Sequence record: OP729297.1
Length of the DNA: 64,000 nucleotides
Reading direction: 5' to 3' (one strand)
The notes below the pieces were generated by a model that searched no databases, was not told where the DNA came from, and saw only the letters and a list, made by a program, of their open reading frames with translations. The position numbers were made by a program, and so were the translations under genes. This document shows, one piece after another, positions 7,898-56,540 of the stretch. The number at the start of each line of letters is the position of its first letter. Position 1 is the first letter of the stretch.

Positions 7898-8122
7898 TTA
7901 GCTTTCGAGTGTTTCCTCGTTCTTGAGGCCGTGTGTGCGACAGAAGGCCTGCCACCGTTTTTCAACTTCACGGTCCTCAACGAATTTGATTCGGCAAGAG
8001 TACGCAGTCTTAATAGCGACCATCGCTTGCTTCTTCTTAGGGAATTGCTCACGCCAGGCCATAGCTACAGGCGTCAGTACCAGATGCAGATACTCATTCA
8101 ATTCAGTAGGTGTCATTAGCAA
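7898..8122 (-). CDS. hypothetical protein
   Basis: 74 aa ending just before a terminator. Confidence 0.65.
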   Translation of the reverse strand: MLMTPTELNEYLHLVLTPVAMAWREQFPKKKQAMVAIKTAYSCRIKFVEDREVEKRWQAFCRTHGLKNEETLES

Positions 8123-8388
8123 TAATCCTCTGAGCCATCTTGACCGTCACGACGATTGATACGTGGGTCGCGATCATCTTCGGCGCGTTGTTTGTCGGCA
8201 GCATCTTGCTGTGCCTGATCGTCTTCGTTCTGCGCATCGAGAATCATGCCCACCAGCACTTCACGATCAGGCACATCGTCGTCATCGTCCAGATCGTCCA
8301 GCAGACCTTTGGCACTCGCCAGATGATAAAGCACATCAAGCGGCATGTCTTCGAGTTCTTCGCGTTCGTATACCATAACATTCTCCAA
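8116..8388 (-). CDS. acidic hypothetical protein
   Basis: 90 aa, SD GGAG, Asp-rich. Confidence 0.75.
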   Translation of the reverse strand: MENVMVYEREELEDMPLDVLYHLASAKGLLDDLDDDDDVPDREVLVGMILDAQNEDDQAQQDAADKQRAEDDRDPRINRRDGQDGSEDYC

Positions 8389-8392
8389 ATAG

Positions 8393-8415
8393 AAAAGCCC
8401 CGCTCAATGCGAGGC
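8393..8415 (-). terminator. intrinsic terminator
   Basis: GCCTCGC-ATTGA-GCGGGGC followed by TTTT. Confidence 0.7.
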
Positions 8416-8424
8416 AATGTGTGT

Positions 8425-9039
8425 TTACATTAATACGGTCATGCGAGCCAGAACAGGATAGTCGTCGTTGTGGCGCTTAATGCCGTTGTCTTTGTTGAGT
8501 TCGAATGCTGTGCGGTAGCGCTGAGTGAAAACGCCAACGCCATGATCGTGCTGCTTCACGTTATGATGAATATCGACAACGTGAATGCCTTTATCGTGCA
8601 GCGTCAGGCACAGGTCGGTCAGCGTACACATGCCACCGAAGTATTGAGTGAAACGCTGGCGGCTTTCGAGGTCAAGCGACAGCAGATTAGGATTGTTGCC
8701 TGATGCGTCATTCGACACGTTGAAACGCGGCACGTCTTTCAGGTCTTCTGCGTACATGTCGTACACATCAATACTGCCTTTCAGATCTTTCGGCATGACA
8801 GTCACAGGCATAGCGTGTGCGTCGGTCAGCGGGTCGAACGTAATGCGAACGTTGTGTTCGTCGATAGGCGTGATAGAGATGTTCTTTAACGCGAACGCAT
8901 TACGGTGGCCAGTGTCTACGTGTACGATCATACACTCACATTCCACCAGCTCTTGTACGTGCTTGGCGTCGATTGCAAAGTTACCAGCAGCCAGAGAAGC
9001 GTAAGAGCGTTTGGCGAAGAAAGTTTTAATAAGGTTCAT
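8425..9039 (-). CDS. hypothetical protein
   Basis: ~204 aa from MNLIKT. Confidence 0.75.
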   Translation of the reverse strand: MNLIKTFFAKRSYASLAAGNFAIDAKHVQELVECECMIVHVDTGHRNAFALKNISITPIDEHNVRITFDPLTDAHAMPVTVMPKDLKGSIDVYDMYAEDLKDVPRFNVSNDASGNNPNLLSLDLESRQRFTQYFGGMCTLTDLCLTLHDKGIHVVDIHHNVKQHDHGVGVFTQRYRTAFELNKDNGIKRHNDDYPVLARMTVLM

Positions 9040-12565: not shown

Positions 12566-12577
12566 CGTCAGAATAAG

Positions 12578-12612
12578 AAAAGGGCCATCAGATATTCTCT
12601 GAAAGCCCTTTT
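12578..12612. terminator. intrinsic terminator
   Basis: AAAAGGGC..TCAGA..TCTGA..GCCCTTTT hairpin. Confidence 0.7.
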
Positions 12613-12616
12613 ATCG

Positions 12617-12877
12617 TTAAGCAAGTAGCAACCGGAATTGAAGTGTATTGTCGCCTTCTATCTCATGCCATACAGCCTGACCAACCAGCTCTTGGCCATC
12701 AAAGAAAGAAACAACACTGGACGACTCTTGCACACTGCGGCAGTTTTTCGTTGCTGCCAGAAAATCTTCGCATTGTACGTTGGTCGCCTTCCGCTCACTA
12801 CAAGCGTTTACTTTATTATTGCACCAGTTCGAGGACCGTGCGTTGTACTTCAACCTGATAAGGCTACGACCGCACAT
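12617..12877 (-). CDS. hypothetical protein
   Basis: 86 aa; SD GGAG; CTAATTTC upstream at 12924-12931; terminator downstream. Confidence 0.6.
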   Translation of the reverse strand: MCGRSLIRLKYNARSSNWCNNKVNACSERKATNVQCEDFLAATKNCRSVQESSSVVSFFDGQELVGQAVWHEIEGDNTLQFRLLLA

Positions 12878-12951
12878 GTTATTTCTCCAATAACTCTACG
12901 TCAGCACTACTTGCCAACATATAGAAATTAGAGAGCAGGCTAAGAATATTC

Positions 12952-13719
12952 TTAAAAGCCCTTGAAGTCCCTGAGGATGTATTCTTCAAAGAATAGGCGT
13001 CGGAAGTCTTCGTGGAAGATGATACGGTGGTTCGTTTTGAACTCGCAGTCATCACACGCGAGTGACCACAGCAGGTTATGCACTTTGGATAGCAGGTAGT
13101 CCGTACGCACACAGAAGAACTCCAGGCCGATCGTAATCGTTTCGGCACGAAGCTCGTGGTATTGTTGATTGCTTTCGCACTTCATCAGTGCATCAAGGCT
13201 TACAGATGAAACCAAACCGCTGCGATATTCAATGTTGCGTCCACCCATGTGCATAAATGAAGCAGCGCCGTAGTCAAGAATAGCCTGCCACAAGTCCGGG
13301 TTTGAATACACCAAAGACAGCTCACTGTTTTTGAGGTCAGTATCACCTTCTTTCTGTTTCAGGCTGTCTATGATTTCTAGGACGCGTGTGGCAACCTTGT
13401 TCATTGTGTCGCTGCAAACATACGTTAGATCGTGCATCAACACAACGTGGGCGCCAGCGTAAGTATAGTCACGATGACTGATAGGCGGTTCGTCCACACC
13501 AAAGCAAATGAGAGTGTGTGGCAGATTGTTTGTATTCAGTAACTGCTTAACGTAGGCTTCGACTACACGTTTAGAAGTGCCGATGATCACGACAGGCTTT
13601 GACGTGCCGTAATTCAAGCCATTGTTTTCCAGTGCTCGCGCCATATGGCACAGAGAACGGACGTAAGGGTCAAACGATCCCATAGCAGGGATATACATAT
13701 GTTGTACACGAGATTTCAT
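12952..13719 (-). CDS. hypothetical protein
   Basis: Start moved to MKSRVQ after SD GGAGG. Confidence 0.75.
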   Translation of the reverse strand: MKSRVQHMYIPAMGSFDPYVRSLCHMARALENNGLNYGTSKPVVIIGTSKRVVEAYVKQLLNTNNLPHTLICFGVDEPPISHRDYTYAGAHVVLMHDLTYVCSDTMNKVATRVLEIIDSLKQKEGDTDLKNSELSLVYSNPDLWQAILDYGAASFMHMGGRNIEYRSGLVSSVSLDALMKCESNQQYHELRAETITIGLEFFCVRTDYLLSKVHNLLWSLACDDCEFKTNHRIIFHEDFRRLFFEEYILRDFKGF

Positions 13720-25667: not shown

Positions 25668-26078
25668 TCAAGTGTATCGAGAGTTGGGTTCTTTGCCGTC
25701 GAGAATATCGGTTAGGATATTTGCTCTGTAGTCCAGTAGCAATCTCTGGCCTTCGATGTTCTTGTCTTGACTATTAACCAGTTCTTCAAGGCGTCTAATG
25801 CGACGCTGAATCTCTGGTGTTGGATGCTTGCGACTGAGTAGAGCCATCTTAACTACCAGTTGTTCTCTCATGGTCAAGGCCGATCGCAGGTTATCACAGG
25901 TCTGGCTGACCAACATCAGCATTACCAGATACTTACGCGACTGTACTTGATCAGGTGGCTTTACCTTAGAGAGAATAACGTCGATGCAGCGAGGCACCAC
26001 ATAACCTAGCTGTTCAGTGCGATAGACAGACTCCTTAAGTCGGCGCAATGATCGTTCATAATCTTTTTGTATGCTCAT
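25668..26078 (-). CDS. hypothetical coiled-coil protein
   Basis: 136 aa, ATGA-coupled. Confidence 0.75.
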   Translation of the reverse strand: MSIQKDYERSLRRLKESVYRTEQLGYVVPRCIDVILSKVKPPDQVQSRKYLVMLMLVSQTCDNLRSALTMREQLVVKMALLSRKHPTPEIQRRIRRLEELVNSQDKNIEGQRLLLDYRANILTDILDGKEPNSRYT

Positions 26079-27166
26079 AGCTCAAATGTTTTTACGATAT
26101 GCTTCGGACGTTGAGACTTCTGCTTCTTGTCCGGCAGCAGACCTTGTTGTTGAGTTTTCCGACCCGTACTTACGATTTCCATATATGTCAGGTCAGGGTT
26201 GGCCATGATTCGCTGCTCTAACTTCTTCATGAAGTCAATCATGTGTGATTGAATAAAGCAATAGTCAACAAAAGGGCATGTGTCATATCCGTGGAACTCG
26301 TCCCAATAATACTCAGCGCTCTTGCACGGCTTACGTTTAATAGCTGGCAGCAGATCACCCGTGCGCGCCGATTTTACCGCAGCATCCCATGCGCGTATTT
26401 GCTCCATCATAAAATCTTTTGCGCGTTTTGACTCTGCCTCGTCAAACACAAAGGTCTTCTCGACAAACTTTTTAGGGTTGTCACGCGGTACGTACACCAG
26501 AGTGTAGTCCACGATGTTGTAGCCATAACGCTTTTTGAGAAGATAGGCGTAGGTCGCGATCTGAAAGCGATGGTACTTAACAAAGAACGAACCATCTGCG
26601 GCCTTAGTGACCATAGTTGATTTCAAATCGATCAGACTGTATGTGCCGTCAAGATTATCAATCAGTCCATCGACGTAACCTTTGAGTGACTTGTACAGGA
26701 CTTTCAATTCTGCATAAGCCATAGGTTGATCGCAAGATGGGCAGCGGTTGTTCGTGCTTTTAGTTCGCGTGTACTTCCCTTTCTTGTACTTACCGTCAAC
26801 CATTTTGCCTTTGGTCTTCGGGTACTCTACGCACTTCTCGTTGGTACACTTCCAGTGACCAACCATCTGACCACTGTGGCCCAGAGCATTCTGCAACGAT
26901 TCGTGCATCCCTGTCCCTGCTTTCGCAAAGATGTTCAGCAACGTACCAGACTCACCAGTCATGCACTTGTTGTGCTTCTGGTAAATCAGCTTGGCCGTTT
27001 CTTGAATCGCACAGATAGGAAACATTGAAGGGCTGACACGTTTCTTCGGCCAGCGCTTCTCTTGGTTCTTTACGTCAAGCGCAGCATCGATCATCTTGCC
27101 GATGCGCGACAACACGCGAGTATCATTGACTCGCGCTGGTACGTTTGCGAACGTTCTCATAGTCAT
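26075..27166 (-). CDS. Cas4-like PD-(D/E)XK exonuclease
   Basis: SPSMFPIC, GTGMHE, GYVDGL..LIDLKS, QIATYAY, C-terminal Cys cluster; inserted CxxxxC..CPSC. Confidence 0.85.
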   Translation of the reverse strand: MTMRTFANVPARVNDTRVLSRIGKMIDAALDVKNQEKRWPKKRVSPSMFPICAIQETAKLIYQKHNKCMTGESGTLLNIFAKAGTGMHESLQNALGHSGQMVGHWKCTNEKCVEYPKTKGKMVDGKYKKGKYTRTKSTNNRCPSCDQPMAYAELKVLYKSLKGYVDGLIDNLDGTYSLIDLKSTMVTKAADGSFFVKYHRFQIATYAYLLKKRYGYNIVDYTLVYVPRDNPKKFVEKTFVFDEAESKRAKDFMMEQIRAWDAAVKSARTGDLLPAIKRKPCKSAEYYWDEFHGYDTCPFVDYCFIQSHMIDFMKKLEQRIMANPDLTYMEIVSTGRKTQQQGLLPDKKQKSQRPKHIVKTFEL

Positions 27167-27458
27167 CCTCGCTTACGGCAATTGTTTGTTCAAAGAAAAC
27201 GAACTTGTAGTAGCGAGTACCAAACAGGTAACAGCGTACTTCAACACCTTCTTCCTTGAAAGAATACATCAGGCGCAGACTACTGGTCATTGTCTCAATA
27301 TCAGTAGCGGCAGGCAAAGTAAGGCCTATCATATCACCCTGATTGTTGAACGCACCTAACGTTTGAGGTTCGACTTTGAGTAGATCGCAAAACTGTAGCC
27401 AGTGCCGATCATAAAAGCGACGTTCCGCTTTATGTACATAGCGATGTGGATTACCCAT
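27123..27458 (-). CDS. hypothetical protein
   Basis: 111 aa ORF. Confidence 0.7.
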   Translation of the reverse strand: MGNPHRYVHKAERRFYDRHWLQFCDLLKVEPQTLGAFNNQGDMIGLTLPAATDIETMTSSLRLMYSFKEEGVEVRCYLFGTRYYKFVFFEQTIAVSEDDYENVRKRTSASQ

Positions 27459-27474
27459 TCTTATTGTCCCTTTT

Positions 27475-27483
27475 CTGTAAATA
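27475..27483 (+). promoter_or_regulatory. class B motif CTGTAAATA
   Basis: Upstream of primase. Confidence 0.65.
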
Positions 27484-27522
27484 TAGCTATATGCGTAAAT
27501 TACGAAACGAATAGAGGATGGT

Positions 27523-28581
27523 ATGGCAGAAGATGTCCATCAGATAATTCTCGATGAAATTGGCAAACTGCCAGGCGAGAAGAAATACAACGGCGACACT
27601 GTTATGGTGTGCTGTCCGTTCCACAGCGATAAGACTCCTAGTTGTGGTATTTACACATCTGTAGGGATGGAGATACCGCTCGGATTCTTTCACTGCTTTG
27701 GTTGCGGTGAGAAAGGTGGTTGGAACAAACTCGCAGCACACGCGAGACTACAAGAGATCAAAGGCTGGGCGCTAAAAGATGCTGGCACGAACTCTCTTAG
27801 TGCTCTGCTTAAAACGTATGACCAGATAGGCTCGAAGATTGGTACTTACCCATCAGTTGGTCTGTTGATGAAAGCGCTTGGACGTAAGAGCTACATGGAG
27901 TGGCCGCTTGATGTTGAGTGGCGCGGTTATCCTGGAGCGCTTGTTCGTGCTGCTGGTGGTTTGCTTAACGCACAGCACACAGGGACGAACGTTTGTTTCT
28001 TCCCATGCAAACACGGAACGAAATACATAGGTGGTATCGCTGCATATCTGCGTAAGCAAATGAACGGCACCAGCTATGTGAACTCGCAAGGTGATTGGGC
28101 AAAAGACAAAGGCCTGTTCCCACTTCCATTAGTCAAAGAGTGTTTGAAGAAATACAAGCTGCGGTACGTTGTGCTGGTGGAAGGTCCTCGTGATGCTCTC
28201 GCGCTGTTATCGTATGGTATACCTGCTCTGGCCGTTCTTGGCGCAGAACAGTTTGGTGAAACGAAACGCAGAACGATTGAGATGCTTGGTGTGAGTGTCG
28301 TGTACACCATGACAGATAACGATGGTGGTGGGAAGTTGCTGCGCACCAAGATCAAGGAAGAGTTTGCGAAGAACTCACCAGTACCAGTCAAACACTTCAA
28401 GCTGCCGCGTGAGTTTGATGAAGAAGGTAAACTGATTAAGCTCGACCCAGACAACGCACCATTCAAGTTGATCAAAGAAGTTCGCATGACACTGAAAGAC
28501 ATTCACGGCAAGAAGTGCATCATGCCAGCGAAAGCGCTTGGATGGAATCGACCTAAAGCAATAGAGAAGAAAGGAAAGTAG
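27523..28581 (+). CDS. dnaG: DNA primase (CHC2 Zn finger plus TOPRIM)
   Basis: CCPFHSDKTPS..CFGCG; LVEGPRDAL; TDNDGGG. Confidence 0.92.
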   Translation: MAEDVHQIILDEIGKLPGEKKYNGDTVMVCCPFHSDKTPSCGIYTSVGMEIPLGFFHCFGCGEKGGWNKLAAHARLQEIKGWALKDAGTNSLSALLKTYDQIGSKIGTYPSVGLLMKALGRKSYMEWPLDVEWRGYPGALVRAAGGLLNAQHTGTNVCFFPCKHGTKYIGGIAAYLRKQMNGTSYVNSQGDWAKDKGLFPLPLVKECLKKYKLRYVVLVEGPRDALALLSYGIPALAVLGAEQFGETKRRTIEMLGVSVVYTMTDNDGGGKLLRTKIKEEFAKNSPVPVKHFKLPREFDEEGKLIKLDPDNAPFKLIKEVRMTLKDIHGKKCIMPAKALGWNRPKAIEKKGK

Positions 28582-34164: not shown

Positions 34165-34824
34165 ATGACTCGTATTAAGATCAGCTTGAGCAGTGAAGCG
34201 AATGGGGATATGACCAATAAGCCACAGCCTGCTTCTGACATTCCAGATAGCTGGCCAGATCCCAACAAGCTGACAGGTAAAATTCCGTTTGACGCGAATC
34301 AGAGCGAAACAGCCGACGACATGTTCGACCCTGATAAAGCTGTCGAAGGTAACCCTGATTTGCGCAACGGCAACACCAAGCCGGGCGCAGAGGGTAAAGC
34401 GTCACGCCCTGACGAGAACTACCGTGCTGGTGGCCGTACCACGAATCAGGTTGAATCCGTGCATTGCAATAAAGTGAATGCGCTCGGACAGCCTGTTCGT
34501 TTCACGAAAAACGACATTATGAGCGGTGGTCTATCGTTCAAAGACCTGTTCGGTGACGTATTCGGCGATATCTTCGGTGATCGTCGTGTGCAGAAAGCGA
34601 TTAGCAGTGCGCTCACTGCTAACGAAGGCGTATCGGTATCGAAAGGCAAGTCTAAATCAGCTAAAATGCGCTCGCAGATGCTTAAAATGGTCATGCCTGA
34701 GCTATCGCGTGAACAGGGCGAGCGTTTAGCGTCTGCGATGGCCGAACACGACGGCGAAACAGTCAAGCGAATACTGACTCAAATCGGTGTTAAGCTCGGA
34801 AAACGCGTTTCACAGAAAAAATGA
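34165..34824 (+). CDS. hypothetical protein with MTRIKISLSS N-terminus
   Basis: 219 aa, SD AGGAG; variant of the SLS tag. Confidence 0.8.
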   Translation: MTRIKISLSSEANGDMTNKPQPASDIPDSWPDPNKLTGKIPFDANQSETADDMFDPDKAVEGNPDLRNGNTKPGAEGKASRPDENYRAGGRTTNQVESVHCNKVNALGQPVRFTKNDIMSGGLSFKDLFGDVFGDIFGDRRVQKAISSALTANEGVSVSKGKSKSAKMRSQMLKMVMPELSREQGERLASAMAEHDGETVKRILTQIGVKLGKRVSQKK

Positions 34825-35227
34825 TCTGATTTTTCGTTTCAAAATTGGGGAAAGTCCTTGATTTTTCTCGGATTTTCCTCATTTTTAGTCTGAAAAGGGG
34901 CATTTGGTCAAAAAATGTACTACTTTTTTGGAAAAATTTACACGGTTTAGACGACCTAGGGTTTTCCGCTAGATCGCTGCCCAGGGTGCGTAGAGGGTGC
35001 AATCTCGGCTGTTCGGAGCATGGTTTCTTTATTTTCTATGTCTCCGAAACGTGCCGCCTAAAGATGTACCTGTAGTTGTAATGTTCAAGCGTACCACGAG
35101 CGTTGTAGCTAGCCCGCTGTAGCCCATGCCTTCCATGCCTAGCTGTTGTAGCTTCCAGCTGTAGCATTCGGAGTTAAGAGTTGTCTGATTCTGTAAAGAA
35201 ACGATAGAAAAATCAGGTAATCATGAT
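34825..35227. other. candidate replication origin / regulatory intergenic region
   Basis: ~400 nt non-coding; clustered T-tracts; TGTAGC x4 (35104, 35118, 35147, 35160); CCATGCCT x2. Confidence 0.4.
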
Positions 35228-40037: not shown

Positions 40038-40624
40038 TGATCAAATATATTTTCTTCGACATGGACGACACGGCATTTGATACGCATAACTTCATGTTGT
40101 GCTATCTGATGAACTTTGGGATCTATCCAGGCAGTGACACGTACATCACGCCAGAGAATGGACATGAGCCTTTCGTCGAAATGTTGGAAGATGGCCGCTT
40201 CATGCTTGAAGCCAACATGCGTGACTACTTCATCCAGACTGTTGCGATGTTGGTGCGTGAAGGTTTCAGCGTAGGCATTTGTACGCATCGTGGTTATCAC
40301 GCTAAAGGTGAGCGCAACACACGCAAGGCACTTGAGAAGCACCTGTCGCTGTTTGATCATATCGAAGTGCTGGACAGTCGTCAACATCCAGATAAGATTG
40401 CCTACCTGAATGAGAAGTTCGGTGAAGGTACTTGGATTCTGGTTGACGACAATCCTGTTACTGCGGTGCGCGACAAGTTCACACGCGTCGGCGATCAACT
40501 GGTACTGCCTAACAATGTGATGCTGTTCACCAAAGGATGGAACACGCACATTGATCATCCTCACCGAATTAGTTCATTCGACAAGAAACATTTCTTGCAA
40601 AATCTTCTCCCGATGTTGGGTTAA
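40037..40624 (+). CDS. HAD-family phosphatase, 5'(3')-nucleotidase-like
   Basis: FFDMDDT (motif I), ICTHR (II), DK (III), LVDDNP (IV). Confidence 0.85.
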   Translation: MIKYIFFDMDDTAFDTHNFMLCYLMNFGIYPGSDTYITPENGHEPFVEMLEDGRFMLEANMRDYFIQTVAMLVREGFSVGICTHRGYHAKGERNTRKALEKHLSLFDHIEVLDSRQHPDKIAYLNEKFGEGTWILVDDNPVTAVRDKFTRVGDQLVLPNNVMLFTKGWNTHIDHPHRISSFDKKHFLQNLLPMLG

Positions 40625-40651
40625 GAATTGTCTGAATATTTCACAATGTTT

Positions 40652-40659
40652 CTAATTTG
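40652..40659 (+). promoter_or_regulatory. class C motif CTAATTTG
   Basis: No ORF follows; structured sequence follows instead. Confidence 0.55.
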
Positions 40660-40664
40660 TAACA

Positions 40665-40753
40665 GTACAAAACAGCGCATACGGAGTGTGTGCTGACTGT
40701 TTAGTTCGGCCTGTTTCTTTTGCCGAATTTGGGGATAGGCCGAACTCTTTTTT
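40665..40753 (+). ncRNA. candidate small RNA (two hairpins plus U-tail)
   Basis: CAGCGCATAC/GTGTGTGCTG stem; 14-bp stem 40704-40717/40732-40745 followed by TCTTTTTT. Confidence 0.5.
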
Positions 40754-40756
40754 GTA

Positions 40757-41003
40757 CAGACTCGGCCCAGAGTCACCCTAGGCCAAATAGCGTAACACCG
40801 CGTTATCGCTAATGGCCGAAAGCGGCTGCTCTAGGCTGCGAACGCTGCTACCTGCCGATAAGTTCGCAAGCCGCAAAGGGCGTAAGACCGCAAGCGCTAC
40901 CGTGTCGGTGCATTCGAAAGACACGGGGAGAAAGCCCTGGCTAGACCGTCATCTGGCGAGGGTGGACTCCAATAGGTTTTTCACGGAGAGCCTATTGGAG
41001 TTT
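40757..41003 (+). ncRNA. candidate structured ncRNA of unknown family
   Basis: At least six nested helices, GNRA-type loops, 16-bp terminal hairpin whose G-U pairs form only on the + strand. Confidence 0.65.
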
Positions 41004-41046
41004 AAGACTTTTCTGACTTTATTCTTGTGTGACTACTCGCAGTAAA

Positions 41047-41055
41047 CTGTAAACA
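41047..41055 (+). promoter_or_regulatory. class B motif CTGTAAACA
   Basis: Upstream of the 65-aa gene. Confidence 0.6.
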
Positions 41056-41095
41056 TAATTCAGAAGAACGAGAAATTTTTAGCACAGGAGAATAG

Positions 41096-41293
41096 ATGCT
41101 TCGTAGACCAAGCTACCGTGTTGTCGCCGACTTGATTCAGGCTGACGGTACATTCACCACTCACACTGTTGAGAGTGGCATAAAAGATTATGACGTTGTG
41201 GAAAAGAAACTTGAGTCCATCAAGCAGAACCCGCCGTCCCACTTTAAGCAATTCTTCCGCGTGGTGCCACGCTGGGAAATGAGCTTTGCCTAA
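41096..41293 (+). CDS. small hypothetical protein
   Basis: 65 aa, SD AGGAG. Confidence 0.75.
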   Translation: MLRRPSYRVVADLIQADGTFTTHTVESGIKDYDVVEKKLESIKQNPPSHFKQFFRVVPRWEMSFA

Positions 41294-41435: not shown

Positions 41436-42722
41436 ATGGCGAAAGAAGAAAAGAAAAAGAAGAAGTCGCGTTCGTTCGGTGACGATAAGCCATCGAAAAA
41501 GAAAGGCGGTTCTTCCGAGTCTGTAGAGTTGACCACGATTAACTTTGCAGACCAATTCCGACCGAAGAAGATTGAAGACTATGTTGGTCAAGACCACATC
41601 GTTAAGATCATGAAAGGTTGGCAGAAGTCGAAAACGATTCCATCAACGATGATCATTACTGGCCATCTTGGTTCTGGTAAAACAACGTTTGCTCGTCTGG
41701 TGGCGAAGTACATCAACTGTGAATCGTTCTCGGCCTGTGGCAAATGTCGTTCGTGTGAAATGCACGACCGCGGCGCACACCCTGACGAGCAAGAGTTCGA
41801 TATGGGCGGTGAAGCTGGTAAAGTTGACGGCAGCCAGAAGATTGTGGACAGCGCACCATTGAGTCCGATGTTCAAACGTCGTGTGTTCATCTTCGACGAA
41901 TCGCATCTCATGTCCAGCGCAGCCGAATCGAAGTTCCTTAAGATCACCGAGCAGCCACCAGCGCACGTTGTATTCATCTTCGTAACAACGAACCCAGAGA
42001 AGATGAAGAACACGATGATCAGCCGCATGACGCAACTGCCTATCAGGCCGATTCCTACTGACGTGATTCATAAGCGTCTGTTGGAGATCAGTGACCAGCT
42101 TGATATCATGCCGAAGAAAGATAAGGCGCGTGATAAAGCAGACGCAGCATTGCATCAGGTTGCTGAATATGCTGGTGGCCAGATGCGTGGTGCAATCACC
42201 ATGTTGCAGAACATCTACGCTTCGGTGAAAGGTGGTGAGGACTTCGATAAGAACCTCGTTGCCGAACTCGCAGCAGCAGATCCAGAGATCGATATGGAAG
42301 CGAAAGCTGTCCAGATGATCGGTGCGTATCTTGCGATGGACCTGATTGGTGTTATTCAGTTCCTGCGTGAAGCGAACAACCCTCGTGCAATCGTAGCGAA
42401 AGCTCGTTGGATTATTCACGGTGTGTTGGGGCATTATGCCGAAACGAATAAGTGGCAGTCGGCTGGCCTCAAGATGTTCATGAACATGGTCAAGAAAGAC
42501 AACATCAAAGTCAATCTGGTCAGTTTGGTGTATCTGCAATCCGCATTAGCAGAAGCCGAAGTAGCATTCAACTCTACATCGGTGCCAGCAGATATCATGC
42601 TGGAAACTGTGACCACCAGAACCATGTCTGATATCTATAGCGGCAAGCTGGTGGTTGATTTGGGTAACGACGACGAAGACGACGAACCCAAAGAGAAGAA
42701 GAAAAAGAAAAAGAAGAAGTAA
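41436..42722 (+). CDS. dnaX: DNA polymerase III gamma/tau-like clamp-loader subunit
   Basis: FRP..EDYVGQ, GHLGSGKTT, INC..CGKCRSC, DESH, LKITEQPP, AGGQMRGA. Confidence 0.92.
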   Translation: MAKEEKKKKKSRSFGDDKPSKKKGGSSESVELTTINFADQFRPKKIEDYVGQDHIVKIMKGWQKSKTIPSTMIITGHLGSGKTTFARLVAKYINCESFSACGKCRSCEMHDRGAHPDEQEFDMGGEAGKVDGSQKIVDSAPLSPMFKRRVFIFDESHLMSSAAESKFLKITEQPPAHVVFIFVTTNPEKMKNTMISRMTQLPIRPIPTDVIHKRLLEISDQLDIMPKKDKARDKADAALHQVAEYAGGQMRGAITMLQNIYASVKGGEDFDKNLVAELAAADPEIDMEAKAVQMIGAYLAMDLIGVIQFLREANNPRAIVAKARWIIHGVLGHYAETNKWQSAGLKMFMNMVKKDNIKVNLVSLVYLQSALAEAEVAFNSTSVPADIMLETVTTRTMSDIYSGKLVVDLGNDDEDDEPKEKKKKKKKK

Positions 42723-43494: not shown

Positions 43495-43944
43495 ATGGAA
43501 ATCATGGTCAGTTTGAGTGTGCGCTCTAGCCCACTCGAAGATACCAAAGTGAGTTTAGAAAACTCGCGTGACGATCTCAAAGGTGCGCAACGCAGAAGTA
43601 ATGCGGCGCGTAAAGAACTGAACGACAAACAATCCGAGGGAGATACACGAGGTGTTGAGGTCGCACGTAAGAAAGTGCAGGACACTCAACGTTCGGTAAA
43701 GACCCAGCAGGATATCGTTCGCACCAACCAACAACGTGTGAGCCGTGCTGCTGTCGTTGATCGTTTGGTGAAAGAATGGAACCGTCTTGAGAAACTGAAA
43801 GGCACCGACCAAGATACTGACGCGACGAAGAAACAACGCGCAGCATTGTCTGGTCAGATCGCCGAAGCGCGTAAAGCGTTACAGCGTATCAAGCGTCCTA
43901 AATCCACAAGGCCTAAGAAGCCTAAGAAGCCACGGAGGTACTGA
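43495..43944 (+). CDS. basic coiled-coil protein with MEIMVSLS tag
   Basis: Start after SD GGAG; Arg/Lys-rich. Confidence 0.85.
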   Translation: MEIMVSLSVRSSPLEDTKVSLENSRDDLKGAQRRSNAARKELNDKQSEGDTRGVEVARKKVQDTQRSVKTQQDIVRTNQQRVSRAAVVDRLVKEWNRLEKLKGTDQDTDATKKQRAALSGQIAEARKALQRIKRPKSTRPKKPKKPRRY

Positions 43945-44228
43945 TGGAACTCACCGTAGATCTTTCTAAGCCTGTGTGCAACGTACCAACTCCAGAACAG
44001 GACTACGCCGAACTTTGTAAGATTGACGCGAAGATTCGTGGCCTGATGATGGACCAACGTGAAGCAATGCCTGCTGTTATTCATCTGATAGATGATGAAC
44101 TGGTATGGCCTAAGCGCTTGCACAGACAGCTACGTCGGCGTATTGGTCTTGAAAATGTTGATGGTCCGTTCTATGGAGACCACTACCTGGATAATGGTGT
44201 GCGCAAAGTGTTCGCAGGGGCTGCCTAA
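43944..44228 (+). CDS. hypothetical protein
   Basis: 94 aa, TGATG-coupled. Confidence 0.75.
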   Translation: MELTVDLSKPVCNVPTPEQDYAELCKIDAKIRGLMMDQREAMPAVIHLIDDELVWPKRLHRQLRRRIGLENVDGPFYGDHYLDNGVRKVFAGAA

Positions 44229-44262
44229 CGGTGGCCCTTCTTTTTGTCTATACCGATCAAAA

Positions 44263-44271
44263 CTGTAAATA
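44263..44271 (+). promoter_or_regulatory. class B motif CTGTAAATA
   Basis: After a terminator-like hairpin (44216-44245), heads the sbcC operon. Confidence 0.65.
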
Positions 44272-44307
44272 ACGAGTATCATTAACACCAATACTTGGGC
44301 TTTAACC

Positions 44308-44520
44308 ATGAACCAGACTATCAATATCCGTGGCTCGAATAGCCGCTGGAACGTAATGCGTCACGATACCGATATCAATCCAGTAACAGGCAAAGAGGAG
44401 AAGACACCGCAGTGCATCTTCTCGTCTGCTACTCCTGTACCAGAAGAAAAACTGAATGAGCTGCGCCAGGTGTATCGTGCTGCTGACCTTTGGGTTGAGC
44501 GTCAGGGAGTATTCCACTAA
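44308..44520 (+). CDS. small hypothetical protein
   Basis: 70 aa, TAATG-coupled to next gene. Confidence 0.7.
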   Translation: MNQTINIRGSNSRWNVMRHDTDINPVTGKEEKTPQCIFSSATPVPEEKLNELRQVYRAADLWVERQGVFH

Positions 44521-44720
44521 TGACTGCTATCCAGCGCAAACCGATCGCTATGCCACTGTGGCGTGTTTTAAAACCAATCGCAAGCGATACCCGCGACGAA
44601 TCATATGCGTATGATGTGATCGCAGAATCTGCCGAGCCGTACACCGCTGATGAAATCGAAGTATTCGAACAGATTCACGGTACAGGTCTTATCCAGGAAG
44701 AAACAATCGAGTACGTCTAA
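44520..44720 (+). CDS. small hypothetical protein
   Basis: 66 aa, TAATG-coupled on both sides. Confidence 0.7.
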   Translation: MTAIQRKPIAMPLWRVLKPIASDTRDESYAYDVIAESAEPYTADEIEVFEQIHGTGLIQEETIEYV

Positions 44721-55451: not shown

Positions 55452-56540
55452 ATGGACTCTGTAGTGATGAAAAAGAAAAAAGTATCTGAGATGTTAGAGG
55501 CTCTTGTCACATCTGACTGGCACTTCGAAGGGCTTGCTAATCATTTCCCTACTGACCACGTTGACCGTCAACTCGAAACGATCGACCGTATCTATCAGTA
55601 TGCAATCGAGCACGGCATTCGTCACATCTTCGTTCCTGGGGATATCACTGATAAGTTTAAGATGGACGACGAGACTAAGCGCAAGCTGCTCCAGTTCTTC
55701 TTGAAGTACGAAGGGATTATTGATACGTGGTATAGCGGTGGCAACCATGACTGGGCAGATATGTCGAACACCAGCATGGACTTGATTAAGACGTTCTGTG
55801 AGTGGGACTTCTTAAAGTCACTGCACATCTACCTGCGTCCTGAACAGGTAGAGATTGATGGTGTGATCGTTAACTTCCTGCCGCACCCTGCGAAAGAAAG
55901 TATCAGACACAAGAAGCCGTGCCTGAACTTCTGTCACGTTGAAGCAGTTGGTGCTCTCGGTGATAACGGTCGTCCGCTTAAAGCGAAGCACGATATCAAG
56001 GTTGACCCTCGTGACTATACGATAAGCGGACACATCCATCTTGCTCAGGTGCTTGAGAAGAAGCGCTTCGAGTATTGTGGTTCACCGTATCAGAAAACAT
56101 TTGGGGAAGCGTTGCCGAAGGGATTCATCCACATTCGCGCCAAATATAAAAAAGGTGAGCTGGTGGTTCAACGGAAGTTCGTTGACAGTAAGCCTGGGTT
56201 TAGATTGGAAACAGTTGCAATTGAAAATCAGAAAGACTGGTCACGTCTGGAAGTAAACCCTGCGATTCGCTACCGACTCATTGTTAAAGATACGGTGTCA
56301 ATCCCAGCAGATATTCGTACACGCGTCCCAAATATTTCCCAAATAAATTCCACGAATAAACGTGTCGATCTCGATAATATAGATACAGTTGATGTTAGCG
56401 AGCTGGCGCTTGCGGATATTGACCCACGTGATGGCCTAAAGGATTACCTGAAGGCTTCGGGAATTAAAAAGTCTTTGCGGGTTCGTGCTCGCAAGGAACT
56501 TGACGCGGTGTTATCTGAAATAGGGTATGCTGCTATGTAA
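55452..56540 (+). CDS. sbcD: SbcD/Mre11 (T4 gp47-like) nuclease
   Basis: TSDWH, PGDI, GGNHD, GHIH, YCGSP. Confidence 0.92.
   Translation: MDSVVMKKKKVSEMLEALVTSDWHFEGLANHFPTDHVDRQLETIDRIYQYAIEHGIRHIFVPGDITDKFKMDDETKRKLLQFFLKYEGIIDTWYSGGNHDWADMSNTSMDLIKTFCEWDFLKSLHIYLRPEQVEIDGVIVNFLPHPAKESIRHKKPCLNFCHVEAVGALGDNGRPLKAKHDIKVDPRDYTISGHIHLAQVLEKKRFEYCGSPYQKTFGEALPKGFIHIRAKYKKGELVVQRKFVDSKPGFRLETVAIENQKDWSRLEVNPAIRYRLIVKDTVSIPADIRTRVPNISQINSTNKRVDLDNIDTVDVSELALADIDPRDGLKDYLKASGIKKSLRVRARKELDAVLSEIGYAAM

Follow-up and report, generated by a model that had tools for sequence, protein, structure and literature searches.

Does the intergenic gap of ~470 nucleotides (nt) between a HAD-like gene and a DnaX-like clamp-loader gene in the Erwinia phage vB_Ea_2910A encode a functional RNA and, if so, of what kind? 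The DNA analysed here, referred to as the window, is a stretch of 64,000 nt from sequence record OP729297.1. An earlier note on it, made by reading the letters, had proposed a densely folded noncoding RNA (ncRNA) of ~250 nt at 40757-41003, of no family that its author recognised. We found that positions 40663-41004 (core 40757-41004) encode, on the + strand, a genuine conserved structured RNA that belongs to no catalogued family. In a BLAST search of positions 40600-41100 against GenBank phages, the 100% match is the source of the window, the Alexandravirus jumbo phage vB_Ea_2910A (262,854 bp), and 45 further Erwinia or Dickeya jumbo phage records match at 70-99.8%. A 267-nt core was found in 48 related GenBank records. 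The RNA-bearing gap has a length of ~470 nt in every record fetched and carries no annotation in any of the 46-48 GenBank records.

The 254-nt stretch folds on the + strand at -107.3 kcal/mol (z = -4.89), a value that none of 200 shuffles reached, while the minimum free energy (MFE) of the same stretch on the - strand has a z of -3.07. Extension of the 5' end (40663-41021) gives -152.6 kcal/mol and z = -6.15, and the homologue from Dickeya phage JA11 folds with z = -6.34. From 17 relatives RNAalifold predicted 65 pairs, and in 20 of these both partners have changed. A core structure written by hand was then scored on a MAFFT alignment of 17 relatives (A1) that had not been fitted to that structure, with the 3' partners slid by 1-3 columns and 500 column shuffles as controls. 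Standard pairs make up 94.3% of 1237 cells, vs 32-46% in the slid controls; both-side changes occur in 26 pairs (4-9 when slid), and the covariation score is 0.258 (0.03-0.07 when slid). On four of the five measures none of the 500 column shuffles matched the observed values; the count of further pair types was matched by 152 of them. The proposal of a folded RNA is thus supported both by its energy relative to shuffled controls and by compensatory changes in syntenic homologues.

Within the helices G-U cells outnumber A-C cells by 137 to 15, so that pairing is kept on the + strand only. The longest stop-free stretch differs in frame and length from phage to phage; the open reading frame (ORF) of 77 aa at 40812-41045 was therefore rejected as a gene, and no conserved ORF was found in the RNA region among the relatives compared. 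Covariation, the G-U excess and the lack of a conserved ORF agree with the earlier suggestion of a + strand phage ncRNA. The same observations bear on a function at the DNA level, such as a replication origin, a set of protein-binding palindromes or a cruciform. The base of the terminal hairpin is a sequence-invariant inverted repeat (ACTCCAATA...TATTGGAGT), the element adjoins replication genes and repeated motifs lie on both flanks, all of which would suit a DNA site. However, pairing is kept on one strand, and the pseudoknot and the long-range helix P3a described below covary, which is needless for sites in double-stranded DNA. The GC-skew minimum lies at ~26-28 kb and not at the RNA locus, and tandem repeats are missing. 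We consider a DNA-level element extremely unlikely.

Is the RNA a divergent member of a known family? A search of Rfam 15 at gathering thresholds gave no match in the whole window. At E values up to 10 the window and the gaps of JA11 and SNU5 gave chance matches only (15-23 bits vs thresholds of 38-114). The families covered include 6S, RNase P, SRP, CsrB/RsmB, EAR, ROOL/GOLLD, riboswitches, self-cleaving ribozymes and group I/II introns. ARAGORN reported no tRNA or tmRNA gene in the 64-kb window. What had been said by eye about the absence of known families and of tRNA or tmRNA signatures therefore stands for the window and, in the case of Rfam, for two divergent homologues. Searches of the full-text literature turned up no report of an ncRNA from these phages. 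A Csr/Rsm-type sponge was rejected: the 359-nt transcript contains 6 GGA (~5.6 expected) and only the loop of hairpin H0, in the leader, shows an ANGGA hairpin.

Orphan structured RNAs have been predicted by comparative genomics before, both as the motifs of Weinberg et al. 2017 (PMC5737381) and in bulk predictions (PMC10690425). The RNA described here resembles ROOL, GOLLD, raiA and the Weinberg motifs in being intergenic and phage-associated, with a multi-helix pseudoknotted fold supported by covariation. As in the ROOL/GOLLD/raiA-type orphans, its loops and junctions are invariant, no gene for a partner lies next to it and no function has been assigned. It differs from them in that it has no sequence or structure match in Rfam 15, and it is much smaller than GOLLD or ROOL.

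The distribution of the RNA was followed from the closest relatives outward. Sequences from Alexandravirus, Sasquatchvirus and Snuvirus were taken as group A. When a profile hidden Markov model was made from group A alone, it recovered, with E values of 1e-13 to 8e-10, the gaps at the syntenic place in pEa_SNUABM_5 (Rivsvirus), in Yoloswag and in an IMG/VR contig; these form group B. Dickeya phage JA11 (Salmondvirus), located by synteny, has a shorter version of the RNA, and JA11-type sequences make up group C. A profile of groups A and B, with no group C row, detects JA11 and a related contig with E values of 5.8e-5 and 3.5e-4, both at the expected position and in the expected orientation; two further members of group C came to light later. 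The RNA is present in six genera of Erwinia/Dickeya jumbo phages (Alexandravirus, Sasquatchvirus, Snuvirus, Rivsvirus, Yoloswagvirus and Salmondvirus), always between the HAD-like and the clamp-loader (dnaX-like) genes. The HAD-like neighbour protein of JA11 is only ~35% identical to that of the window while the RNA is kept, and its retention across six genera at this level of neighbour divergence argues for strong selection on RNA function.

More distant phages with HAD homologues (SNU54, Eowyn) have no such gap. A 15-mer scan of IMG/VR gave mostly chance matches. Hairpin and core pattern scans of IMG/VR found only this clade plus chance hairpins, and the latter were rejected by nhmmer. The core pattern in GTDB (one genome per species, 185,579 prokaryotic species) and in JGI metagenomes likewise returned only this clade and chance hairpins. 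By these collection scans the RNA is rare in metagenomes and confined to one clade of Enterobacterales jumbo phages.

Most of the complementary segments listed in the earlier note are present in the sequence, and comparison of the relatives sorts them into helices that are kept and helices that are not. All features below lie on the + strand. The core starts with the candidate hairpin P1 (GACUC/GAGUC, 40759-63 / 40770-74), which is nearly invariant, with 96% of the cells paired and no informative variation; it occurs in group A and is absent from groups B and C. The P2 hairpin (40781-85 + 40788-92 / 40807-11 + 40813-17), also confined to group A, changes from CG to UA and from UA to CG and corresponds to the predicted GGCCA-TAGCG/CGCTA-TGGCC hairpin; its supposed extension by TAAC/GTTA is not kept in Y3 or SNU25. 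The 14-nt loop of P2, called L2 (40793-806), contains the invariant GUAACACCGCGU, unchanged in all group A members. In pEp_SNUABM_52 (locus L015, 1180-1200) a 10-nt tandem duplication of GTAACACCGC is found within L2, relative to the near-identical Y3.

Helices P3a (GCGG/CCGC, 40822-25 / 40888-91) and P3b (GCUCU/AGGGC, 40828-32 / 40877-81; both-side changes in 3 of 5 pairs) are kept in all relatives and displace the GCGGCT/AGCCGC helix drawn earlier. P4 (40834-43 / 40862-72) covaries strongly, with 6 of 10 pairs changed on both sides, and takes in TGCGAAC/GTTCGCA (40837-43 / 40862-68), which had been recognised correctly. Its loop L4 (40844-61) carries GCUACCUG. Pseudoknot partners for loops L2 and L4 (CACCG:CGGUG, CUACC:GGUGG and L2:GCGG) were examined by eye and rejected, the pairing being lost in Y3 or SNU25. 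The internal-loop strand (G/A)UAAGA (GUAAGA in the window, 40882-87) is conserved in all groups; TAAGAC is unchanged in 23 sequences. Positions 40784-40801 and 40874-40891 form an 18-nt direct repeat, D1 (CAAAUAGCGUAACACCGC and CAAAGGGCGUAAGACCGC), with 83% identity at a distance of 90 nt. It is the sole internal repeat. By this likeness the 5' half of P2 with its loop is a paralogue of the P3b/UAAGA/P3a 3' strand, and D1 suggests either a duplication within the RNA or a single binder with two sites there.

The 3' half of the core contains an H-type pseudoknot that the earlier note had overlooked. Stem 1 (S1, GCGCU/GGUGC, 40894-98 / 40907-11) is 97.6% paired in alignment A1, with 2 pairs changed on both sides. 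Stem 2 (S2, CCGUGUC/GACACGG, 40900-06 / 40920-26), with both-side changes in 4 of 6 pairs, is the predicted CCGTGTC/GACACGG helix. Loop L3 occupies 40912-19. Junction J (GGAGAAA, 40927-33) follows, and a GGGGA run across S2 and J is present in every homologue. The P7 hairpin (40934-45 / 40952-63) is 95.7% paired with 4 pairs changed on both sides; its loop L7 (CCGUCA, 40946-51) is invariant together with the closing pairs GACCGUCAUC, and GACCGTCATC of P7 is unchanged in group A. The long-range ACCCT/AGGGT helix that was thought to enclose the core is not upheld: ACCCT is missing at this place in phB78 and SNU30, it is not conserved in SNU22 or Y3, and AGGGT is the 3' strand of the covarying P7. 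The GAAA, GCAA and GTAA sequences taken for GNRA loops sit in junctions or larger loops and form no tetraloops. The terminal hairpin P8 (40964-81 / 40986-41003, loop CACG at 40982-85) was confirmed with 18 bp instead of 16 and with many G-U pairs; it is 94% paired, and 4 pairs of the upper stem are changed on both sides. Its base, ACUCCAA/UUGGAGU, was scored as invariant in all groups, and cross-group covariation (CG/GC/UA) was recorded there.

Across groups A-C the order of the shared core is TTYCTAATTWRTAA, P3a, (G/A)UAAGA-C, a variable P4, the pseudoknot, GGGGA(G), a CCGWCA hairpin and the ACUCCAA...UUGGAGU hairpin. In cross-group alignments that were fitted by hand, P3a is 100% paired with both-side changes in 5 of 7 pairs (GCGG/CCGC, GCGAGG/CCUCGC, GAGcAGAG/CUCUCUC, GGCGAG/CUCGCC and GAACGAG/CUCGUUC). 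S2 is also 100% paired with both-side changes in 5 of 7 (for example CCCUC/GAGGG, CCCGC/GCGGG and CCCAC/GUGGG), and one of its positions is U-A, G-C, A-U or C-G in different lineages. For S1 the same alignment gives 89% pairing and both-side changes in 5 pairs. The fourth group C sequence has GUGCC/GGCAC and CACGC/GCGUG in the pseudoknot. In group B another hairpin bears the CCGUCA loop (GCACCGUCAUGC); the group C counterpart reads CCGACAG. In JA11 (locus L186, 3712-3915) an AUG 8 nt 3' of the junction GGAG opens a frame of ~67 codons through P7 and P8, which ends in a TGA overlapping the dnaX ATG (ATGA). This AUG reads AUA in a related contig (L189), and the frame is therefore probably fortuitous.

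The RNA could also be a ribozyme, which would cleave or process itself and thereby free the core from its leader or cut a polycistronic transcript; the compact pseudoknot fold of the core and its unvarying junctions (UAAGA and GGAG) speak for this. Small ribozymes are common in phage genomes. The Rfam self-cleaving families gave no match here even at E up to 10, a conserved candidate cleavage site was not found, and the size of the RNA with its modular hairpins and conserved loops suggests recognition of a partner over a catalytic pocket. A ribozyme is in our opinion very unlikely.

Where does the RNA begin and end? The 3' hairpin was placed correctly in the earlier note, and the 5' limit was set too far downstream: conserved structured RNA reaches upstream to ~40663 through two more hairpins, H0 and T1. 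The RNA probably starts ~95 nt 5' of the position first given, with a two-hairpin leader. This leader domain (40665..40757, + strand) is found in groups A and B only. Its closing helix GUACAAAA/UUUUGUAC (40665-72 / 40750-57), inverted repeat I4, is formed in the MFE fold and both arms are invariant. Hairpin H0 (40673-79 / 40689-95), with loop UACGGAGUG, covaries, and so does T1 (40703-11 / 40738-46), a terminator-like hairpin with a 9-bp G+C-rich stem followed by U6 (40748-53). RNAalifold on 13 leader sequences predicted 23 pairs, 9 of them with both-side changes. Close relatives (loci L002, L006, L010 and L012) carry between 6 and 12 T in the run after T1 (40748-40753), which we read as homopolymer slippage at a terminator-like site. 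The G+C-rich hairpin and the U6-U12 run of T1 are those of an intrinsic terminator.

Upstream of the leader lies a promoter-like region (40621..40662, + strand), composed of TTAAGAATTGTCTGA (40621-35) with a -35-like TTGTCT (40628-33) and the conserved TTTCTAATTTGTAA (40649-62) with a -10-like TCTAAT (40651-56), 15 nt after the 40621-35 copy. The motif at 40652, from which the earlier note had supposed transcription by read-through, is TTYCTAATTWRTAA (40649-62); it is unique in the window, is conserved 5' of the RNA in all three groups and has a putative role as a promoter. On the + strand of the window TTAAGANTTGTCTGA occurs 5 times vs 0.62 expected, and four of the five copies are intergenic and upstream of genes (35174-88, 40621-35, 41002-16 and 42764-78; the copy at 60576-90 lies within a coding sequence). 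Copies of TTAAGANTTGTCTGA flank the RNA gene on both sides, and the motif probably represents a class of promoters or regulatory sites in this phage. TTTTTGTAC, tried as a promoter class, was rejected since it is not enriched. Positions 40646-58 (ATGTTTCTAATTT) and 41044-56 (AAACTGTAAACAT) form a 77% inverted repeat, I3, that brackets the RNA gene.

The stretch 3' of the RNA (41002..41062, + strand) contains the second copy of TTAAGANTTNTCTGA (41002-16, repeat D2) and a -10-like CTGTAAACATAAT (41047-59), before a 65-aa ORF (41096-41293); its counterpart in Y3 reads TTGAAC-N16-TATAAT. With a motif copy right after P8 and before the 65-aa ORF, the conserved tail of the earlier candidate is more likely the next promoter region, and 41002..41062 is probably outside the RNA. 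In a terminator scan P8 was found at 40963-41004 with the tail AGACTTTTCT; in group A it is followed by UUUAAGACUUUU, and P8 of the window has the hairpin and U-run of an intrinsic terminator. A U-run after P8 is not a trait of the whole family, since groups B and C have CUCACCG, CCUGUAC or UACCCAUAAC there; in these groups a separate strong terminator is located ~50 nt 3' of P8. The downstream gene varies as well: the 65-aa ORF in group A, two other small ORFs in group B, and dnaX directly in group C. The tie to one regulated downstream gene that marks riboswitches was not seen in the three groups, in which the genes differ and promoter-like motifs or terminators stand between. Its own upstream motif, the terminators and the varying downstream gene together suggest an RNA gene that stands alone.

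The alternative is a cis-acting leader, a riboswitch or attenuator or a processive antitermination element, in which the core decides between a stop at T1 or P8 and read-on into the 65-aa ORF, dnaX and beyond. The switch would consist of two exclusive helices. The GGAG of J and the GGAGU of the P8 3' strand are both complementary to a single ACUCC, and J can pair with CUCC (40967-70) at the P8 base, giving an alternative, P7-extended form; this would be the antiterminator and the full P8 the terminator. All cells of the alternative J:CUCC helix are paired (100%, 8 distinct rows), a result that 80 of 500 shuffles equal. It measures 10-11 bp in group C and only 4 bp in groups A and B. One base of the shared strand is U, C or G in three group C lineages, where its partner in J is A, G and U (A-U, G-C, U-G) and its partner in the P8 3' strand is A, G and C (U-A, C-G, G-C). 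This would fit selection on the two conformers or on an intermediate of folding, with three lineages being too few for significance. T1 and P8 in group A are both hairpins with U-runs, the RNA stands in a co-directional array just 5' of replication genes, and its junction nucleotides are conserved in the fashion of an aptamer; these too would fit a leader.

The RNA is indeed like known terminator/antiterminator leaders (riboswitch platforms, HK022 put and the Bacillus EAR) in its position 3' of a promoter-like motif in a co-directional array, and in having hairpins with U-runs and an ACUCC with two alternative partners. The Bacillus EAR is also pseudoknotted. It differs from them in several points: no Rfam riboswitch or EAR match was obtained, the U-run of P8 is missing in two of the three groups (B and C), and the downstream genes are not conserved between groups and have promoter-like motifs of their own. 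In group C a separate strong terminator and such a motif separate the RNA from the gene that follows, and in group A such a motif does. The alternative helix is just 4 bp in groups A and B. We regard a cis-acting leader as fairly unlikely.

A second ORF-poor gap at 34822-35227 (+) folds with z = -5.65 and has no Rfam match. It contains five YTGTAGC copies and two UUCGGAG strands opposite one CUCCGAA, and its end, GGAG and then TTAAGAGTTGTCTGA, closely resembles the 3' strand of P8 with its tail. The GGAG/CUCC/GGAG likeness between the two gaps hints at a regulatory grammar shared in these phages.

Loop L2 offers a candidate contact with an mRNA. The exact 11-nt complement of L2, ACGCGGTGTTA, is found on the sense strand at 56503-56513 (+), inside the ORF at 55452-56540; an 11-mer is expected by chance ~0.015 times per strand in 64 kb. 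The site is located 30 nt before the stop codon of the gene for a 362-aa Mre11/SbcD-like metallophosphoesterase, which is annotated in phB78 as a recombination-related endonuclease, and phB78 carries the same two copies. When the 14 group A nuclease genes were aligned (1128 columns), 58% of the columns were invariant with four invariant runs of at least 10 nt, one of which is the L2 site, including third codon positions of Ala, Val and Leu. The single change at the site (A to G, in SNU7) preserves a G-U pair, and a flanking G/A polymorphism leaves the pair with loop position U12 intact. Neither L2 nor the nuclease site occurs in groups B and C. For an Hfq-type trans-acting small RNA, L2 would be the candidate seed, and P8 with a U-run is present in group A; the search for target sites covered 64 kb of the 262-kb genome.

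These data allow that in group A the RNA is chiefly an antisense riboregulator, in which L2 (UAACACCGCGU) kisses ACGCGGUGUUA near the stop of the nuclease mRNA and alters its stability, its processing or the expression of the next gene, an idea that overlaps with action in trans. In common with kissing-loop antisense RNAs (CopA, RNA I and phage small RNAs), the RNA has an invariant 11-nt loop segment complementary to a conserved phage mRNA site and ends in a terminator hairpin. Its target differs in being 15 kb off in the 3' coding region and not at a ribosome binding site, and the RNA by far exceeds typical small RNAs in size and degree of structure, with L2 missing in groups B and C. Furthermore, the match came post hoc from the complements of three loops, the site encodes the conserved peptide AVLSEIGY so that protein constraint accounts for part of the conservation, the group A lineages are closely related, and the universal core is left unexplained. 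Other complements of 10, 9 and 8 nt elsewhere in the same mRNA are conserved on neither side and fit chance. An antisense contact as the main role in group A appears quite unlikely.

What remains as our preferred reading, on balance and by a modest inclination, is an independently transcribed, trans-acting ncRNA that serves as a ribonucleoprotein (RNP) scaffold, decoy or riboregulator. A promoter-like motif of its own, directly behind the HAD gene, would drive its transcription, and in vB_Ea_2910A P8 would act as an intrinsic terminator just 5' of the next promoter-like motif. Acting in trans, it may present its unvarying single strands (UAAGA, GCUACCUG, CCGUCA, GUAACACCGCGU and GGAG) and the P8 base, constant in sequence, as recognition surfaces to a protein or RNA partner. 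Its 3' domain may toggle between GGAG:CUCC extending P7 and the full P8, and in group A the Mre11-like nuclease mRNA may be contacted by L2 at the 3' end of its coding region. One could go further and propose a new class of riboregulator, whose two conformers and loop seeds would couple early transcription to the control of recombination and replication, in Alexandravirus by L2 kissing the 3' end of the nuclease mRNA; we hold this bolder version to be quite unlikely.

The idea of an RNP scaffold comes from the analogy with phi29 pRNA. This and other viral scaffold RNAs are likewise phage-encoded, possibly early, and a few hundred nt long with several hairpins and conserved loops. To our knowledge pRNA has no sequence or structural similarity to the RNA described here, in which we found no complementary loop pair for a ring and which comes from an unrelated phage lineage. 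The idea of a decoy comes from the type III antitoxin RNAs and the phage pseudo-ToxI, where tandem 36-nt repeats stand beside a toxin gene or are expanded in the phage (PMC3475682). These are likewise pseudoknotted and are used by or against phages of Pectobacteriaceae and Erwiniaceae, but the RNA here has neither a tandem repeat nor a nearby toxin gene. Tandem Repeats Finder gave 0 rows and no toxin gene is found among the flanking genes; a type III antitoxin or pseudo-ToxI mimic was rejected. A putative 8-mer resemblance to ToxI is at most a lead.

A guide or template RNA for an RNA-guided nuclease or a reverse transcriptase (omega RNA, tracrRNA, msr/msd or DRT ncRNA) was also rejected, as no gene for such a partner enzyme is nearby. 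Pfam gave no RNA-binding, reverse transcriptase, TnpB/IscB/Cas or RNA-guided nuclease domain in the eight flanking genes, and the annotated 49-kb neighbourhood in phB78 has no gene for a reverse transcriptase or an RNA-guided nuclease. A gene called 'CRISPR-associated' was rejected as the RNA-guided partner; it encodes a PD-(D/E)XK nuclease.

Several points weigh against a trans-acting RNA as we picture it. The presumed promoter, the 5' end and the role of P8 as terminator are deductions from sequence. T1, which resembles an efficient intrinsic terminator, stands between this promoter and the core, so that the core would need read-through, processing or another promoter; this difficulty is softened by the ability of the T1 U-run to pair with the 5' A-run in the mature fold and by the lack of any leader in group C. 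No partner protein emerged from the neighbour genes, which have no RNA-related Pfam matches. The cross-group alignments (P3a and the pseudoknot; J/P8) were fitted to the structure by hand. The two-state model draws on three group C lineages, and its observed values are reached by the 80 of 500 shuffles already mentioned. The L2 complement, one of three loop complements compared after the fact with 64 kb of a 262-kb genome, lies in a segment that is conserved as protein, and a contact through L2 cannot be the core function because groups B and C do not have the loop.

The genes around the RNA form part of a long co-directional array just 5' of the replication genes. The RNA is preceded by a gene of 195 aa and followed by one of 65-70 aa and then by the DnaX-like clamp-loader gene, all on the same strand. 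The 195-aa protein has no Pfam match and is annotated in relatives as phosphoglycolate phosphatase or HAD-like, and the clamp-loader protein matches Pfam DNA_pol3_delta2 at 1e-24. The DnaX-like protein (41436-42722, +) has lysine runs at both ends (MAKEEKKKKKS... and ...KEKKKKKKKK). Further ORF-poor stretches of at least 300 nt, with no ORF of at least 100 aa, are found at 8117-8427, 12574-12954 and 43942-44719. The cumulative GC-skew minimum (~26000-28000) is beside a DnaG-like primase gene (27523-28581, +) and an opposed PD-(D/E)XK nuclease gene (26075-27166, -).

The distribution of this RNA is narrow, and the statements on its mechanism are inferences. What has been added to the biology of these phages is an RNA of ~250-340 nt, supported by covariation, with an H-type pseudoknot, a universal internal loop and a function that is found in no database. 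In jumbo phages numerous intergenic regions await an explanation, and complex folds of tertiary type are known for very few ncRNAs of phages. The RNA is small enough for chemical probing by SHAPE (selective 2'-hydroxyl acylation analyzed by primer extension), pull-downs and cryo-electron microscopy. If the two-state model or the antisense contact is true, it would represent a new type of phage gene control. The phages that carry the RNA are biocontrol candidates against fire blight and soft rot, and an understanding of their conserved noncoding genes would be of practical value.

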